DNA of 64,000 nt from Adineta vaga (taxonomy: Eukaryota; Animalia; Rotifera): assembly GCA_021613535.1 (NCBI GenBank), contig CP075494.1, forward strand, positions 14,322,001 to 14,386,000. The letters run 5' to 3'. Positions within the stretch are counted from its first letter, which is position 1. The number at the start of each line of letters is the position of its first letter. Position numbers and translations under genes: made by a program. The notes below the pieces were generated by a model. The model ran no database searches and was not told the DNA's origin. It was given only the letters and a program-made list of their open reading frames with translations. Below, one piece after another: positions 46,767-55,632 of the stretch.

Positions 46767-47213
46767 TGTATCGATTGTATCTTGAATCATTTGTGATACA
46801 CGTCGATTAAACTCATCTCGATTATTACGGTAGAGTAAAGCAGCTTCTAAGTTAGCTGGACTAAGTGGATTTGGATCAGCAAGAAGTAAACGAATGGAAT
46901 GAAGTACTGCTAAAATATCATAGGATGGTAACCAACCATCTTTAAGTATATCAACACAAATAAATCCATCGTCCCACCAAACATTTGGATGAAAAACTTT
47001 TGTAATAAATTTCACTTGGGGTGGACGAAGTGGATAATCTTCAGAAAAAACTAATTGAAGTTGATATGCACCGTTTTCATAGATACTCTCTTCTGGTCCA
47101 CATATAATGGCATTCCAAATGAGAAAGTTGTCTTCTGATGGACTTGCATCGATTCCATCGACTTTATTCTTAATCAATTGTCGGAAATCTTGTTGTAATC
47201 GACGAATGGCCAT
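46650..47213 (-). CDS. Ubiquitin-conjugating enzyme E2, RAD6/UBE2A-like, with poly-Asp tail
   Basis: MAIRRLQQDF, WNAIICGP, FHPNV...ICVDIL (catalytic Cys), DPNPLSPAN; intronless CDS. Confidence 0.85.
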
Positions 47214-47352
47214 GGATGATGATGATGATGATGATGACGGGTGGTAAAAAAAGGAAGATAACGAAGGATTGTATCTAGAAATGAACACAGAAAATGAAAT
47301 TCATTTGTTTTAATAATCAAATAAACAAAAGTTCGATTTTGTTTTGCTTTTA

Positions 47353-50300
47353 TTAAATTAAATTTGTACTTATAGTTATTTTACTTCGACGAGCTTCATA
47401 ATAAAGTGGATTATATTCCTCATCATCAATATGCATCTAAAATAAATATTAAATCAAGCCAATTAAAAACTTATACATGTAACTTACACTCGATAGACTA
47501 TCGAATAAATTTTGATCTATATGTTTTTCTTCATGTTTAACAATTGAATAGGATGAATTTGGTAATGGGAAAAGAAATTCACTTGAAGCAATTGATCGTA
47601 ATAATAAGCATCGTTCAGAAGCATATGAAAGAATAAAATGTCCAGAAGAGAATTCATTGATCGATGAAGAATCATTTAAACGACAAATTAACATTAATTC
47701 CTATAAAAACAAATCCATAGTATCGATGAGAATAACAAAACATGCACACATACATTTCGTCGGAGATATTCTATTAATGTATCAAATGCAATTTCATTTT
47801 TTTCAATATCATATTTATGGCACGCTGTAGGTAACACGAGAAGTGGCTAAACAAACAAAAAGATTAAGAATCTCGTTTGTTATAAAAAAAAAAACATTTT
47901 TTTTACCATTCCAAATATCATTGATATACAATAATTTGTTTGTTTTATAAAATTCAATGCTTTCAATTGATAGATTGGTAATATGGATGATGTTCGAATT
48001 GATGATGATATTCTTGATGGTTCTGTATAAATAAACTAGAAATAAAATTTCACGGAGAATAAAATAAATGAAGATGATATTACGTACAAATCTCTCATGA
48101 TTTATATGATGATGAGGATCATTCAAGATTTCTTGTAGATCACATCGAATCATAGACCATGATTGATCAATATGATCAGCTAAAAGATAAGATTCATTTT
48201 TGAAAAATAAAGTATTACACAATTGATTTAATGAACAGTTGGAAAATATGTTGACGGTGAAATGTTAAACTAACTATGTTAATTATGCAATCGAACGTTT
48301 CGGTTTCATTCTGTTCGGATCGGGAGAAAAAACATTTCTACAAAATAAAGGAGTTTTCTATTTAAACAGTAGAAAAACTTATTGCGGCTCAAATACTCTT
48401 AAATATTATTTTGTTTCTTGTAGAATTTCCATGATAGTTTCGTCATGTCAGTTACTTTTCATAGGAATGATTCTAATTGTTTTCACAGTTCAAATCAATG
48501 CTGGCTATTGGTTATGTGACTGGGTTAATCGCCGTGGTTGGGTATACTGTCAACGTGGTTACTGTAACAGTTTTGGTAGAAAACGTAGTCATGATATTGA
48601 TTATTCAGAGACAAGTCCGATTCAAAATGAAGATGGAGTTTATTGTACAAACAAAAAGATTTGTTTTTCATGTCATTCTATCAAAGATGATCTATGTTAT
48701 TTAACTCCGATAGAAAATTATTCTCCTCCAAATCATTCAACATCAAATAGAAAACGAGCGACAGAAGCTTGTGAATGAAACCCGAGAAAAAACGTACTCC
48801 TGTAGTTTCTCTCATTCTTATTCAAATAAAATTTCAGAAAAGAATCATCTTAATTTTACTTTTTACATCTGTCGGTAAAAATATCTGCATATGTTCATTG
48901 TCGTGATCATTGTTTAATAACCATGACTTTAAATAAAGACCTATTGAATATTTATCTATTAGTATAAGAAAAAAAAACGAATAACCGAACGAAGAAGAAT
49001 ACGTCGCATACCTTCGTAAATATATTTGATATTTAGTAAATCCGATAATAATATGTTTTGCTTGAATAACTCGATTTGATCATTGTCATTGATACATACC
49101 AATTCGATTTTCTAAATAGACCAATATACAAAAATATGACTCGTTTATATACTATCATGGTTATGTAAACTAAAACAAAGAAGCAAATCCGGTATGAAAT
49201 AAATAACACCCGTCTCTATTTTCTCTCTGATCAAACTACGCAAATTTGTTGGTTGATAATGATTGGTGAATGGCTGCCTTTTTTTCTCTAACTACCTTCT
49301 AACTGACACATGAAGAAGAAATACTAATCTAAGGGTAATAAGTAAAGATATAATTATGTAATGATATTACGCACTTTTTTATTGATTTGATGATTTTGAA
49401 TATATTGATGAATATCTGAAATGGTTGAATCCGTTAATCGATCTGTTAAAATAATAATTTGACAATCATAATCGTTAGAATTCGATGTAACCTATACAAA
49501 AACTAGATTGTTCATAAATGAAATTCAGTCATTGATCTAACTGAACAAAAAACTGATGAATTGGAATCTTTTAGGATTTTTTTTTCGAGATAAAATATCA
49601 CGATTATCCTTCGTGTATTTCTTTTGTTCCTCTAACCACATTTTTTCTCGTACAGGTATGAAACGCACGATTAGACTTTAGACTCTTAACCGCAAAGAAA
49701 AGGATGATATTATCAAACAATCATTGTTTTTATGTTTATTTTTTGAATACAAACGAAATTTCTATATAAAGTGTCTACTACTTCCGATACACGAAAAATT
49801 TGGTTATTCGAATCAAGTAAATGAATAATTAACATTCCATCTTGTTTCAAATAATCTCGCACGAATTTTTTCAATAAAATATCATTCAATACTAATTCCG
49901 ATGAACTACTTATTCGCAATAATTTACGTATAAAACGAATTCGATATGTTAATACTAATGTTTGATATATTGATGAGATAAATGAAATGAAGTTGGATAT
50001 CAATACATATAAAAACCAAAACCAAGCTAATGAAAAAACTTTTTCATTCAACATATTGATTGGTAATACACATTGAACGGTATAATGATGAAGATTTCCA
50101 ATTTCACGTATTCGTAAATCACATAAAGTTACACGTGGAAAATAAGGTGAATCTTTTACAATCGAATGTTGAATTAAAAGTTTATACCAAATATGAAAAC
50201 CATAGAACCAACTAGGTTGACCAAGAATCAACTGGATAAGAATTATTTGAATCAATGAATTGATTAAATAAAACCCTTTAGTAATCAATTGAATTGAACG

Positions 50301-51422
50301 AAGATAATTACCGAAACGTTTTCCACTTGTACAGAATAATAATCGACAAAAATAGTTTGTACGACTAATATTTGGTTTTTCATTTGCTTGACAATAATAT
50401 TCAATTGTATGAACTATTTTTTCAATATGATTTTCATGAATAAGATATTGTAAATCAATACCCGATCGAGTATTCATCGATCGCCAAAGTAAACGTGGAA
50501 AATAAAATCCAAATGCACATAAAATAAGAATAAAAGGTGTCCATTGATAATAACTAATCTCTGCATTTTTTCGCTCAAGTTTCTCATGTGGAATAGTAAT
50601 ATTTGTTGGTATATAATACGTATTTGATATCCAACAATAATTATTTGTATAAGTTAAATAAGCACCAGTGAATTGCGCAGGTACCCAACATGAAATACGA
50701 TTGAAAACAAATGGAGTACCGGTAACAATGAAAGCACAAACGAGTAGAAATCCAACAGTATAACGATGATTGAGACGATCGAAATGTTCATCATCAATTG
50801 ATGTTTGAAATGATTTTATCCATGGAAGTCCATAGATGAAATTAAATAGAGCGATTGACATCGAAATACTTTTTGTATTGTAAAAGGTATTGGCAAATGT
50901 ATCTTAACCTTTAAGCGAAAATTCTTATCGTGATTGCTCTTTTTAAGGAAGATCATTTCATTGTCTTTTATCAAAAGATTAAACTTACACGATGATCAGA
51001 ATTGATTTCACTAAAAGCTAAATGTAAAGCGGAATGCCATGATAAAGATGAATTTATCGTTCGAGTTGATTTCATTGTCCATTTTTGTCCAAGTAATTGT
51101 AATTTACAAAGTGCTACTTGTAGTTCCATTTGATTATTACGTATTGGTGCAAATGGAATAAAAATCTTCAATAAATGTATCAGTTTACGAAGAGAAGAAA
51201 AATCATCCGAAGATCATCTACTTCACTTTGATTTTGACCATTAACAATCAATCCAAACATTGGAATACGTTGTATACCTACATATGTTGTAATAATACTA
51301 AATAATTTATCAAGGCCATGACACATATCTTCAATAGTTTTTTCATTTAAACCGTAATCGATAAGTAATAAACGACCTGGATATATCGTTCGTACAGAAC
51401 GTGTATTTGATAGTTTCGACAT
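47353..51422 (-). CDS. M1AP: Meiosis 1 arrest protein (M1AP)-like; 10 exons: 51422-51222, 51165-50989, 49491-49375, 49111-49012, 48955-48860, 48179-48088, 48035-47907, 47846-47754, 47700-47488, 47436-47353
   Basis: Phase-compatible GT-AG splicing gives one open frame with collinear M1AP-like blocks: GRLLLID, RIPMFGL, IPFAPIRNN, CQIIILTD, YLKSWLLN..NEHMQIFL, IRCDLQE, FGMPLLVLPTAC, LLLRSIASSEFLFP, EEYNPL. Confidence 0.75.
48431..48778 (+). CDS. Small secreted Cys-containing peptide precursor, nested antisense in M1AP intron 5
   Basis: Signal peptide, then GYWLCDWVNRRGWVYCQRGYCNSF-G-RKR, an acidic/Cys segment and a second RKR; TATTTAAA near 48360 and AATAAA near 48826. Confidence 0.7.
   Translation: MIVSSCQLLFIGMILIVFTVQINAGYWLCDWVNRRGWVYCQRGYCNSFGRKRSHDIDYSETSPIQNEDGVYCTNKKICFSCHSIKDDLCYLTPIENYSPPNHSTSNRKRATEACE
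49713..50861 (-). CDS. Innexin (gap junction/hemichannel), intronless, nested in M1AP intron 2
   Basis: DDEHFDRLNHRYT, ISCWVP, NNYCW, SYYQW, FPRVTLCD, VQCVLPINMLNEK, FLWFW-like AWFW. Confidence 0.95.
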   Translation of the reverse strand: MSIALFNFIYGLPWIKSFQTSIDDEHFDRLNHRYTVGFLLVCAFIVTGTPFVFNRISCWVPAQFTGAYLTYTNNYCWISNTYYIPTNITIPHEKLERKNAEISYYQWTPFILILCAFGFYFPRLLWRSMNTRSGIDLQYLIHENHIEKIVHTIEYYCQANEKPNISRTNYFCRLLFCTSGKRFGNYLRSIQLITKGFYLINSLIQIILIQLILGQPSWFYGFHIWYKLLIQHSIVKDSPYFPRVTLCDLRIREIGNLHHYTVQCVLPINMLNEKVFSLAWFWFLYVLISNFISFISSIYQTLVLTYRIRFIRKLLRISSSSELVLNDILLKKFVRDYLKQDGMLIIHLLDSNNQIFRVSEVVDTLYRNFVCIQKINIKTMIV

Positions 51423-51454
51423 GTTTAGATTAGATAGAAGACAAAATGAGACGA

Positions 51455-51678
51455 GAAGAATTTATTTCGTTCAAAATATAGCTCGTTAACCAATGGTCAA
51501 GATCAATCATTCGTTATACAGGTGGCGCATGAAGTCGAAATGATTTACGATGTATATAAAGAACCACTTCTAGAACTAATCGACAACATCATTTTTATTT
51601 TTCTAAAAAGCATGTTTACACAAAGACGACAACAATATCAATTTAGAAATGATAAATTTTAAAACATAAAATGAACGG
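51455..51678 (+). repeat. Direct repeat B, copy 1 (~224 bp; M1AP upstream region / CAP 3' flank)
   Basis: Near-identical to 55353-55576 apart from small indels. Confidence 0.95.
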
Positions 51679-53399
51679 TGAGTATACATGTTCGTCATAT
51701 GGGCATCTCTACGTCTATCTCAGTTACTCCTTCACTCTGACGCTGTTACTCCTTATAGGTGAATACGATACATTGTATGACTATTCAAGTAGATAATGGA
51801 GTCTGCCGATATACAAAATGATTAATAACACGAATTGGTGAAGATCGAACAAATGAACTAGACAGTTGACATCCAATTAAAGTGTGAGAATTTTTGGTGC
51901 CGAACGATTCATTCAATAAAATTTTAAATGTTCTTCTAAATTAAATTTCAATATCAACATTTTCAACTACAATTATCGAACTTTTTAGTGAGAGGATATT
52001 TTTAAAAGGGCATGCTAAAAAGGACATTCTTAAGTGTGTTCGTATAAAATCTATTGTCTAGTAGAGATATGGCTTGAGAGTTTTATTTCAGTATGATAAA
52101 ATGATCTCAATTGTACTAAAACTTCGAAGTTATATTTCACTCAACAATAAATTTTATACAAGGTACAATAAAAAAATGAAAAAAATAGAAGAAAGAGGAT
52201 GTGGGTTTATTTTTGAAGAACATATATGAGACATGTAATAAAGACCATATTTTTAACTGAGCATTACCATAAATAATTAGATAACGTGTGTTTTGCGCCT
52301 TATTTTACCAAATGTACCAGAAATGTGTATGCTATGTTAGGTCTTTTGTCGTCAGAAACATGATATAGACAAAGAAGAAGCTACAGAAAAATTCCGATCT
52401 CTACGGGCCGTTTGATCTTATTAGATTCGATACTATTCCAATGCTGTCAGAGGCCGATAAAGAGTGAGTTTAAAGAACTAATCATATATAAAAATTCCAG
52501 TCACCCTCAATTTTGATAATATAATAACAGAAATAAATTAAAAAATAGTCTTGATGGATGTCGAGCTCAAAATTCAATTGAGAAAATATGTAAAATAGTG
52601 CGGAATTGTTAAACAAACAAATTCATTCCGAAGAAAAATATAAGCGTAGATAATATCAAAAGAGAATGTAGGAGACACTTTACTCTGTTCTGTTTCGATT
52701 CTTCAGTGTTTTCTTAAGACACATTGATATCAGTTTTGTTTGCACTTTTCAATGTACAGCTTCAGAACAATTAGTAAAATAAAGGGCATGTAATTATCTT
52801 TCTGTGTTTCTTTGTTATACTCAGTACTGTATAGCCAATCACATTATATCTGTCTCTCTGACCAGCTCACCAATTAGACATAATGTATCCTTCTTCCTTT
52901 GTTATGGATATATTCTTTCTCTAAAAAGAAGGAAGTCAGTGGATTTTGAAATAAATTAGACGTAGGAGTAGGAAGCACAAATAACAAAGTAAACTGTAAA
53001 CATATGAGGACAAAAGCTTACCTTTTTTTTTAGAAAAGTGCATGAAACTGTTGTATATCCCTTCTGGTCTCAAGAAAAAGCTCTCCTGCTTTTTCTCCCG
53101 ATTTTTATTGAAAATTTTCGAAGTCGAATAGTTGTAGTTAGTATTAAAAAAGTGCACTTGTTATTTTTGTGTCTATCACATTTATTGCCTGTAATTACAG
53201 ACGATATAATACGTACAAATATATAGAACGAAATTAATGATAAATATTTGTTGAATGCTTTAAAATAAATTAGTATCTAATGATTTTTGCGCTGTTAAGT
53301 ATGTGAGAGAGAAAAACCTCATTCATATCTATCTTCCTTTTTCTATTTAAAAAGGATAGGTGTGCTATACTGTTTTGTTTCATTCATTTGTAGGCATTA

Positions 53400-55352: not shown

Positions 55353-55576
55353 GAAGAATTAATTTCGTTCAAAATATAGCTCGTTAACCAATGGTCAAGA
55401 TCAATCATTCGTTATACAGGTGGCGCATGAAGTCGAAATGATTTACGATGTATATAAAGAAGCACTTCTAGAACTAATCGACAACATCATTTTTATTTTT
55501 CTAAAAGCATGTTTACAAAGACGACAACAATATCAATTTAGAAATGATAATAAATTTTAAAAGATAAAATGAACGG
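55353..55576 (+). repeat. Direct repeat B, copy 2
   Basis: Matches 51455-51678. Confidence 0.95.
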
Positions 55577-55632
55577 AATGTATAAATTACAGATAAGTCT
55601 ATGTGAACTAGTTCATTACGATAGAGATGTAG

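Follow-up and report, generated by a model that had tools for sequence, protein, structure and literature searches.

A candidate ortholog of the meiosis gene M1AP, with two genes nested in its introns, in Adineta vaga, a bdelloid rotifer

Ten exons on the minus strand form a single reading frame

The window analyzed here is a 64,000-nt stretch of contig CP075494.1 from the bdelloid rotifer Adineta vaga. Between positions 51422 and 47353, its minus strand carries a gene of 10 exons, hereafter M1AP, in which 9/9 introns have GT-AG borders. Exon 1 (51422-51222) begins with the ATG, comprises 67 codons, and opens a vWA-like M1AP_N domain. Exon 2 (51165-50989, 59 codons) is collinear with orthologs, and exon 3 (49491-49375, 39 codons) lies outside RNA contig coverage. 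Exon 4 (49111-49012) is again collinear with orthologs and has its 3′ end within spliced contigs, and exon 5 (48955-48860, 96 nt) is skipped in frame in one run. RNA contigs and ortholog matches both support exons 6 (48179-48088), 7 (48035-47907), and 8 (47846-47754). Exon 9 (47700-47488, 71 codons) encodes a C-terminal block with the highest conservation. The coding part of exon 10 (47436-47353) contains a YNPL motif and the stop codon (47355-47353), and a short 3′ UTR extends the exon to 47332, where RNA contigs place the poly(A) site. The introns measure 51-60 nt, except for three of 1497, 263, and 680 nt.

The spliced frame is 1302 nt long (433 codons plus TAA), with agreeing phases and zero internal stops. 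A reading made from the sequence alone had proposed that ten exons join into one uninterrupted frame, and the frame, GT-AG sites, phases, and ortholog collinearity all agree with it. Its coordinates for three exons said to be absent from the open reading frame list were exact, with the minor correction that exon 4 does appear there, as a 40-aa entry. Because every exon, in order, matches full-length proteins and bdelloid syntenic loci, the exon structure is confirmed as more than a product of chance.

The RNA evidence consists of contigs of whole runs, which carry no tissue information. Spliced contigs support six of the nine junctions, and a 17-nt overhang alone additionally supports that between exons 4 and 5. 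The four junctions from exon 6 to exon 10 (E6-7, E7-8, E8-9, and E9-10) were each seen in four runs from three studies. Two junctions had been singled out as joining the halves of the gene. One, between exons 5 and 6 (48860-48179), was found in runs X3 and X12; the other, between exons 2 and 3 (50989-49491), falls in a stretch that the contigs do not cover. The latter junction, which spans a nested innexin gene, and that between exons 3 and 4 are both absent from the assembled contigs because 49093-49575 lies outside all of them. Exon 1 is joined to exon 2 in run X3, and run X1 contains the exon-5-skipping joint 49012-48179. The contigs thus show splicing of the 3′ half of M1AP and of exon 1 to exon 2.

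Two old genes are nested within M1AP introns

Intron 2 contains an intronless innexin gene (49713..50861; PF00876, E=1e-79) on the same strand as M1AP; a loose contig end at 49710 marks a poly(A) site of its own. It is kept in A. ricciae, persists as a relic in R. sordida, and has an ohnolog on chromosome 2 (C2). Intron 5 contains, on the plus strand and thus antisense to M1AP, a gene for a secreted Cys-containing peptide precursor of 115 aa (48431..48778), identified by its open reading frame and an RNA contig (48408-48853). A Pfam search of the precursor gave zero family matches. This gene is conserved in A. ricciae, at locus L047, and on the C2 homoeolog, and has decayed in R. sordida. Both nested genes are old; a recent arrival is ruled out by their occurrence on C2 and in Rotaria. 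An Rfam search of 47000-52000 returned nothing informative.

M1AP has been overlooked because these two genes occupy its introns. The expectation that gene predictors would split it was borne out by the A. ricciae annotation, which breaks the gene into an M1AP_N-innexin fusion and a fusion of the M1AP C-terminal half with UBC. A genuine M1AP_N-innexin fusion was rejected for the A. vaga gene, as the window has no in-frame acceptor by which exon 2 could splice into the innexin.

The M1AP locus lies on chromosome 5 (C5), which is collinear with C2, as published (PMC8494291). The C2 homoeolog retains both nested genes and has lost M1AP, which is single copy. A remnant on C2 was rejected, with no HMM match below E=1.9 and the promoter motif missing. 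Since only ~31% of A. vaga genes retain a homoeolog (PMC8494291), the loss of one copy is unremarkable on its own. Crossover genes such as MSH4 revert to single copy following polyploidy (PMC6541637). The M1AP case is similar in that one homoeolog is missing from an otherwise collinear block but differs in concerning a single gene in a single genome. The nested genes would have been in the M1AP introns before the homoeologous chromosomes split; later, one of the two M1AP copies would have disappeared, with the nested genes persisting on both chromosomes.

M1AP is conserved across Adineta and Rotaria

Full-length public bdelloid orthologs (445-447 aa), which are unnamed or mis-modeled in the databases, match 10/10 exons in order, with 53-82% identity. 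The exons are also collinear with syntenic loci in at least eight other bdelloids (Adineta, Rotaria, and metagenomic bdelloids), and every relative bearing a species name belongs to Adineta or Rotaria. The gene order CAP - M1AP - UBC - S10 - L32 is common to the bdelloid loci. Exon 1 is 82% identical to residues 1-67 of P0022/P0026; exon 3 is 53% identical to residues 134-171 of P0026 and has pN < pS against six relatives. A comparison of dN/dS between species, suggested from the sequence alone, gave 0.19-0.40 among stop-free bdelloid orthologs, with pN < pS for every exon. These values are consistent with purifying selection and indicate that it has acted on M1AP across both genera. Loci L029-L032 were rejected because they are bacterial cysN in antisense reading, P0019 was discarded as a repeat artifact, and one alignment was set aside for misalignment.

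Upstream of exon 1, on the minus strand, are three conserved promoter elements: an E2F-like element, TGCGCCAC (51529-51522), an inverted CCAAT box (51494-51489), and a CHR-like TTTGAA (51475-51470), the CHR definition being that of PMC4176359. Their order is constant in seven bdelloid loci, with spacings of 27-29 and 13-14 nt, and they may function as an E2F/CCAAT/CHR-type promoter. The pattern was rejected as a genome-wide regulon, having three exact matches, two of which are a local duplication. The E2F-like word was not found upstream of a SHOC1-like locus described below.

The family assignment is made through orthologs

Precomputed Pfam matches to PF28287 (M1AP_N) were present on nine full-length bdelloid orthologs, and the family also matches the exon-1 open reading frame of loci L002-L005. 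PF28287 is assigned to the window's gene through these orthologs (exon 1 being 82% identical). Rotaria orthologs, with full-length P0012, P0022, and P0026 in place of the window's protein, were used for the feature and shape comparisons. By features (Atlas), the best three matches were chordate M1AP clusters at 0.95, followed by Asunder, Ku, and INTS14 clusters at 0.92-0.93. By shape, M1AP was the top match, with a TM of 0.46 over residues 1-400 of a low-confidence model (pLDDT 40-44). The M1AP identity first proposed from the sequence thus agrees with the Pfam family of the orthologs and with their nearest relatives by features and shape.

Other searches were less informative. Word, profile, and large protein searches returned bdelloid sequences only, with zero vertebrate ones. 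The local Pfam profiles, which do not include PF28287, left M1AP unassigned on both exons and full-length orthologs, and the Atlas comparison of exon 9 alone gave nothing useful. The C-terminal half is weakly Ku-like (E 0.2 or worse). In the PDB, the best structural matches of a bdelloid ortholog were Ku70/80 and INTS14; these are the expected next-best matches because M1AP chains were absent from the results of both the PDB sequence search and the structure search.

In the 433-aa protein, the N-terminal domain is vWA-like and the C-terminal half is Ku/INTS14-like. The evidence supports a single intact bdelloid ortholog of M1AP. It probably resembles vertebrate M1AP in its N-terminal M1AP_N domain and, over residues 1-400, in predicted shape. 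It differs in length (433-447 aa in bdelloids vs ~530 aa in human), with most of the C-terminal tail apparently missing, in a sequence divergence beyond the reach of word and profile searches, and in belonging to an all-female clade with two genes nested inside it.

A probable role in oocyte crossover formation

To our knowledge, M1AP is a crossover-helper gene so far known from vertebrate sperm production. In A. vaga oocytes, bivalents, crossovers, and gene conversion accompany a non-reductional meiosis (PMC9710870, PMC13564844), and mouse M1ap belongs to the meiotic prophase program of the fetal ovary (PMC4574967). We consider it fairly probable that the bdelloid gene is an M1AP ortholog transcribed in germ cells and acting as a SHOC1-type crossover cofactor in oocyte meiosis. 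Its transcription would start from the conserved E2F/CCAAT/CHR-type promoter, and its splicing would bridge the nested innexin. As in mouse and human, the protein would assist the SHOC1-TEX11-SPO16 complex as a non-catalytic cofactor, stabilizing inter-homolog recombination intermediates and favoring class I crossovers, here in the prophase of the non-reductional oocyte meiosis. A genome search gave one weak match for the SHOC1 family (C4:5.51 Mb), which counts in favor of this role.

Several observations count against this reading. The Atlas margin is small (0.95 vs 0.93 for Asunder and Ku). Genome searches gave TPR noise only for TEX11 and zero matches for SPO16, for which the control was likewise silent. 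The bdelloid proteins stop at 433-447 aa, and their last exon, which contains the YNPL motif, is conserved. The position of this motif presumably corresponds to the start of the human M1AP tail. M1AP binds ZZS proteins, and the last 97 residues of human M1AP (433-530) are required for TEX11 binding (PMC12162868); the bdelloid protein is ~100 aa shorter than the human one. M1ap-null female mice are also fertile, the gene being needed for male fertility only (PMC12162868).

The short C-terminus and the unfound TEX11 and SPO16 would also suit an altered complex, in which a true M1AP ortholog is kept or re-purposed for homologous repair of accidental breaks from desiccation or radiation, in oocytes or soma, rather than for programmed class I crossovers. 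Pairing at meiosis in A. vaga has been proposed to serve mainly accidental-break repair (PMC13564844), meiosis genes may persist for repair (PMC5916493), and CHR/E2F promoters typify cell-cycle genes at large, beyond meiotic ones. We nevertheless regard this alternative as unlikely: a SHOC1-like gene is apparently present, albeit as a weak match, and crossovers arise spontaneously without damage (PMC13564844). It also overlaps the crossover-cofactor reading, since both invoke the same prophase.

M1AP might instead be functionally split, with the innexin poly(A) site at 49710 stopping upstream transcripts in intron 2 and the 3′ half starting near exon 4. All spliced 3′ contigs do start at exon 4 or later, exon 3 is uncovered, and CCAAT- and TATA-like words occur within intron 3 blocks that A. 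steineri shares. However, constraint on exons 1-4 equals that on exons 5-10, also against A. ricciae with identical nesting, splice sites and phases are intact, and exons 1 and 2 are spliced in X3. Moreover, the E4-E5/E4-E6 branch interrupts the contigs, and poly(A) libraries are 3′-biased, which makes the coverage hole uninformative. A split gene thus seems improbable.

We give little credence to a divergent vWA/Ku-barrel protein (INTS13/INTS14/Ku-like) whose likeness to M1AP is superficial and whose work lies in transcription or end joining. The Asunder, Ku, and INTS14 feature clusters and the Ku and INTS14 structures would favor it, and INTS13 (Asunder)/INTS14 and Ku70/Ku80 resemble bdelloid M1AP in having a barrel-like region after a vWA domain. 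Yet the orthologs match PF28287, whereas Ku, Ku_N, PF10221, and PF19435 were unmatched in the Pfam search of the full-length orthologs; INTS13 and INTS14 already have their own genes, on C1 and C6; and the structural matches are those expected when no M1AP chain is retrieved. Retention through rare, unseen males and spermatogenesis, suggested by the male-only requirement in mice (PMC12162868), is barely credible, as ordinary cultures yield spliced M1AP transcripts, M1ap belongs to the mouse female meiotic program (PMC4574967), and crossovers in female meiosis suffice to account for selection.

Implications for bdelloid meiosis

An oocyte crossover cofactor would fit recent evidence for a modified meiosis in bdelloid eggs. 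The sequence-only reading had held that an intact M1AP bears on cryptic meiosis; M1AP is indeed retained intact, but its bearing is weaker because a non-reductional A. vaga meiosis with crossovers has already been published (PMC9710870, PMC13564844). Crossovers and most meiosis genes in bdelloids are already known; M1AP there is new. As in bdelloid meiosis inventories (PMC5916493) and studies of non-reductional meiosis, an intact meiotic gene is found in a male-less clade, but we found no literature joining M1AP with bdelloids or rotifers, nor on invertebrate M1AP. Nested genes and short exons can conceal meiotic genes from such inventories.

According to one study, M1AP conservation reaches no further than fish and the ZZS complex is the older of the two (PMC12162868); a bdelloid M1AP contradicts both that range and that age. 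M1AP could be an old bilaterian ZZS crossover component rather than a vertebrate male-specific add-on, bdelloid oocytes using a shortened form for class I crossovers and also to govern how accidental breaks are repaired between homologs. We hold this to be possible but doubtful; if true, the short conserved last exon would be a minimal TEX11-binding element. Bdelloid M1AP alone is no demonstration of sex or males. It is a gene required in mice by males alone, yet under purifying selection in a male-less clade, and it offers a single-copy handle on which pathway produces bdelloid crossovers and on whether these are programmed events or arise incidentally from repair.

Structure and transcription of the M1AP-like gene

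The sequence-only reading had proposed that ten scattered fragments splice into one M1AP-like meiosis gene, and the fragments do join into a single open frame on the minus strand of C5, one of the six contigs of the 100.8-Mb host assembly. Exons 1 to 10 lie at 51422-51222, 51165-50989, 49491-49375, 49111-49012, 48955-48860, 48179-48088, 48035-47907, 47846-47754, 47700-47488, and 47436-47353. Splice sites and frame were checked for each exon in turn: introns are GT-AG throughout with compatible phases, the two split codons encode Asp and Thr, and the frame comprises 433 codons plus TAA with no internal stop. Six introns measure 51-60 nt, and introns 2, 3, and 5 measure 1497, 263, and 680 nt. 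The gene was analyzed exon by exon or through public full-length orthologues standing in for it.

RNA contigs from four runs in three studies were placed on 47000-51800. Junctions between exons 6-7, 7-8, 8-9, and 9-10 were spliced exactly in all four runs, exons 5-6 (48860-48179, a join the earlier reading had singled out) in two, and exons 1-2 in one; for exons 4-5 the evidence was a 17-nt overhang only. Contig coverage was zero over 49093-49575 in every run, so the exon 2-3 join (50989-49491), the principal check proposed by the earlier reading, and the exon 3-4 join are neither seen nor refuted. The poly(A) tail of the transcript begins at 47332; this tail and the spliced joints indicate that the runs are RNA, a label that is itself a guess, and their contig depth does not rank expression level. 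In one run (X1) the 96-nt exon 5 was skipped in frame by a join from 49012 in exon 4 to 48179 in exon 6, with 30 letters on the shorter side. At one other bdelloid locus (L002), a single exon corresponds to exons 5 and 6, which makes this skip impossible there.

Orthologues and family assignment

Exon 9 as query returned eleven matching fragments (53-67% identity), whose profile led to a 408-aa Rotaria socialis protein and from it to orthologues in R. sordida, R. magnacalcarata, two Silwood Rotaria, A. steineri, and A. ricciae; the public Rotaria and Adineta orthologues are all deposited as "unnamed protein product." Orthologous proteins of 447 and 445 aa are tiled in order by the ten window exons. 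The same exon order and largely shared intron positions recur at syntenic loci (CAP, M1AP-like gene, UBC, S10, L32) of Rotaria and Adineta relatives and metagenomic bdelloids, with identical gene order in A. ricciae, the closest relative found. Between-species dN/dS, a check raised with the original claim, was 0.19-0.40 against six relatives (Nei-Gojobori, exon counts summed; probably too high, the DNA being AT-rich), with no stops and with pN below pS in each exon, consistent with constraint. Exon 1 is interrupted by an intron after codon 16-17 in A. ricciae, A. steineri, and three further loci (L002, L006, and L047); both the window and Rotaria lack this intron, implying parallel loss.

The window gene is very probably an orthologue of M1AP, as the earlier reading proposed. 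Its orthologues have a precomputed match to Pfam PF28287 (M1AP_N). By language-model features the best three clusters are chordate "meiosis 1 arrest protein" (0.95), followed by Asunder/INTS13, Ku, and INTS14 (0.92-0.93). A predicted model of the Rotaria protein, of low confidence (pLDDT 40), has an N-terminal domain of alternating beta/alpha, and its top Atlas shape match is M1AP, residues 1-400 (TM 0.46). Sequence and profile searches from the bdelloid proteins returned no non-bdelloid M1AP sequences. The fifth feature match of the Rotaria protein, a 635-aa streptophyte cluster without a name (0.93), could represent a relative of M1AP or INTS13 in plants. Compared with human M1AP, the bdelloid protein is about 100 aa shorter, and its last exon is short but well conserved; the last 97 residues of human M1AP are required for TEX11 binding (PMC12162868).

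Nested genes and locus history

An intronless innexin (50861-49713) lies within intron 2 on the same minus strand. Intron 5 contains a gene on the plus strand (48431-48778), antisense to the M1AP-like gene, whose product is a 115-aa secreted peptide precursor. In A. ricciae both occupy identical introns. Decayed copies of both are present in R. sordida, with an innexin relic in intron 2 (L037:7800-8190), and one distant metagenomic bdelloid retains the peptide gene; locus comparison found neither in A. steineri, R. socialis, Silwood1, or two metagenomic species. Gene order in the window runs parallel to that of C2:2.96-2.98 Mb, in agreement with the published pairing of chromosomes 2 and 5 in Adineta vaga (PMC8494291); with the gene order and nested genes shared by A. 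ricciae, this makes A. vaga almost certainly the host. This C2 segment carries innexin, peptide gene, and UBC in unchanged order and orientation; M1AP exons and promoter were looked for there and left no trace, and a profile search of the genome found M1AP at the window locus only. On the simplest history, nesting would predate homoeologue divergence, M1AP would then have been lost from one homoeologue, and other lineages would repeatedly have lost the nested genes. Crossover genes typically go back to one copy after polyploidy (PMC6541637); most A. vaga genes likewise end up as single copies.

Gene predictors split the locus, as had been anticipated: the A. ricciae annotation consists of an M1AP_N-innexin fusion and a fusion of the C-terminal half with UBC. 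Several Rotaria and A. steineri gene models omit exon 3 or 4. A real exon 2-innexin fusion was rejected, an in-frame splice being impossible in the window.

The peptide precursor has a signal peptide, a ~24-aa Trp/Cys-rich segment, a Gly plus basic cleavage site (a possible amidation signal), and a Cys-rich tail. Conserved versions occur in A. ricciae, L047, and C2; the precursor matched no Pfam family and could give rise to a neuropeptide or an antimicrobial peptide. Upstream of innexin, a block containing GATAAG (50942-50900), kept in A. ricciae and, without innexin, in Silwood1 Rotaria, is probably the innexin promoter. Intron 3 (49112-49374) spans 195-320 nt in most relatives, with L002 and L047 shorter at about 63 nt; two blocks common to the window and A. 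steineri, including CCAAT- and TATA-like words, are possibly a regulatory element, and an Rfam search covering the intron (47000-52000) gave no match.

Promoter

Seven species have a common layout in the region about 50-110 nt upstream of the start codon ATG: TGCGCCAC, 27-29 nt, an inverted CCAAT box, 13-14 nt, and TTTGAA or TTCGAA (TTTGAG in A. steineri). We take TGCGCCAC to resemble an E2F site. In mammals DREAM/MuvB binds CHR elements, and TTTGAA and TTCGAA rank among the three commonest of these (PMC4176359). Somatic divisions in this animal stop after embryogenesis (PMC9710870); together, the pattern match and the end of somatic division suggest germline or embryonic expression. A direct duplication (51455-51689 and 55353-55587; 99% identity over 154 nt) flanks a 3.7-kb esterase block and includes the entire M1AP promoter, with the second promoter copy 3.9 kb upstream, just past CAP. 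In relatives, CAP adjoins M1AP directly.

Predicted function and significance

Mouse and human M1AP binds SHOC1, TEX11, and SPO16, and its loss leaves fewer recombination intermediates and class I crossovers, not zero (PMC12162868). With the structure, splicing at most junctions, constraint, and family of the bdelloid gene established, its product is, by analogy, fairly likely to be the same non-catalytic cofactor. It would be expressed in the germline, bind SHOC1/TEX11/SPO16-type partners, and act in crossover formation in oocyte prophase. In genome searches for the partners, the SHOC1 family DUF5587 matched weakly (E=1.4e-4) one piece of a multi-exon gene at C4:5.509-5.513 Mb, TEX11 gave TPR noise only, and SPO16 gave no match, the control being equally silent.

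Oocytes of A. vaga join homologues into bivalents during a meiosis that is non-reductional (PMC9710870), and they undergo spontaneous crossovers and gene conversions (PMC13564844). Retention of the orthologue chiefly for repair of accidental breaks seems rather unlikely. Innexin has its own poly(A) site (49710), which might functionally split the M1AP-like gene; this is improbable. The coding span of only about 1.9-2.2 kb in relatives without nested genes shows that both halves belong to one gene. The top PDB matches of the Rotaria model are Ku70/80, INTS14, and vWA domains, and the C-terminal half taken alone is weakly Ku-like; INTS14 and INTS13 are encoded by separate genes (on C6 and C1, respectively), and a look-alike from the Ku/Integrator superfamily is very unlikely. 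Retention for unseen males is scarcely credible.

A literature search for M1AP together with bdelloid or rotifer found no paper. Automatic annotations list M1AP-like proteins for other invertebrates as well, so the rotifer copy is probably not the sole invertebrate one. A 2025 paper described M1AP as conserved only down to fish and female knockout mice as fertile (PMC12162868); the presence of an orthologue under constraint in a protostome clade consisting of females contradicts that range and is notable against that fertility. Bdelloids are known to retain most meiosis genes (PMC5916493). Since these genes and meiotic recombination were already known in bdelloids, the contribution of M1AP is a component specific to one pathway, and a target for knockout, and not a new phenomenon.
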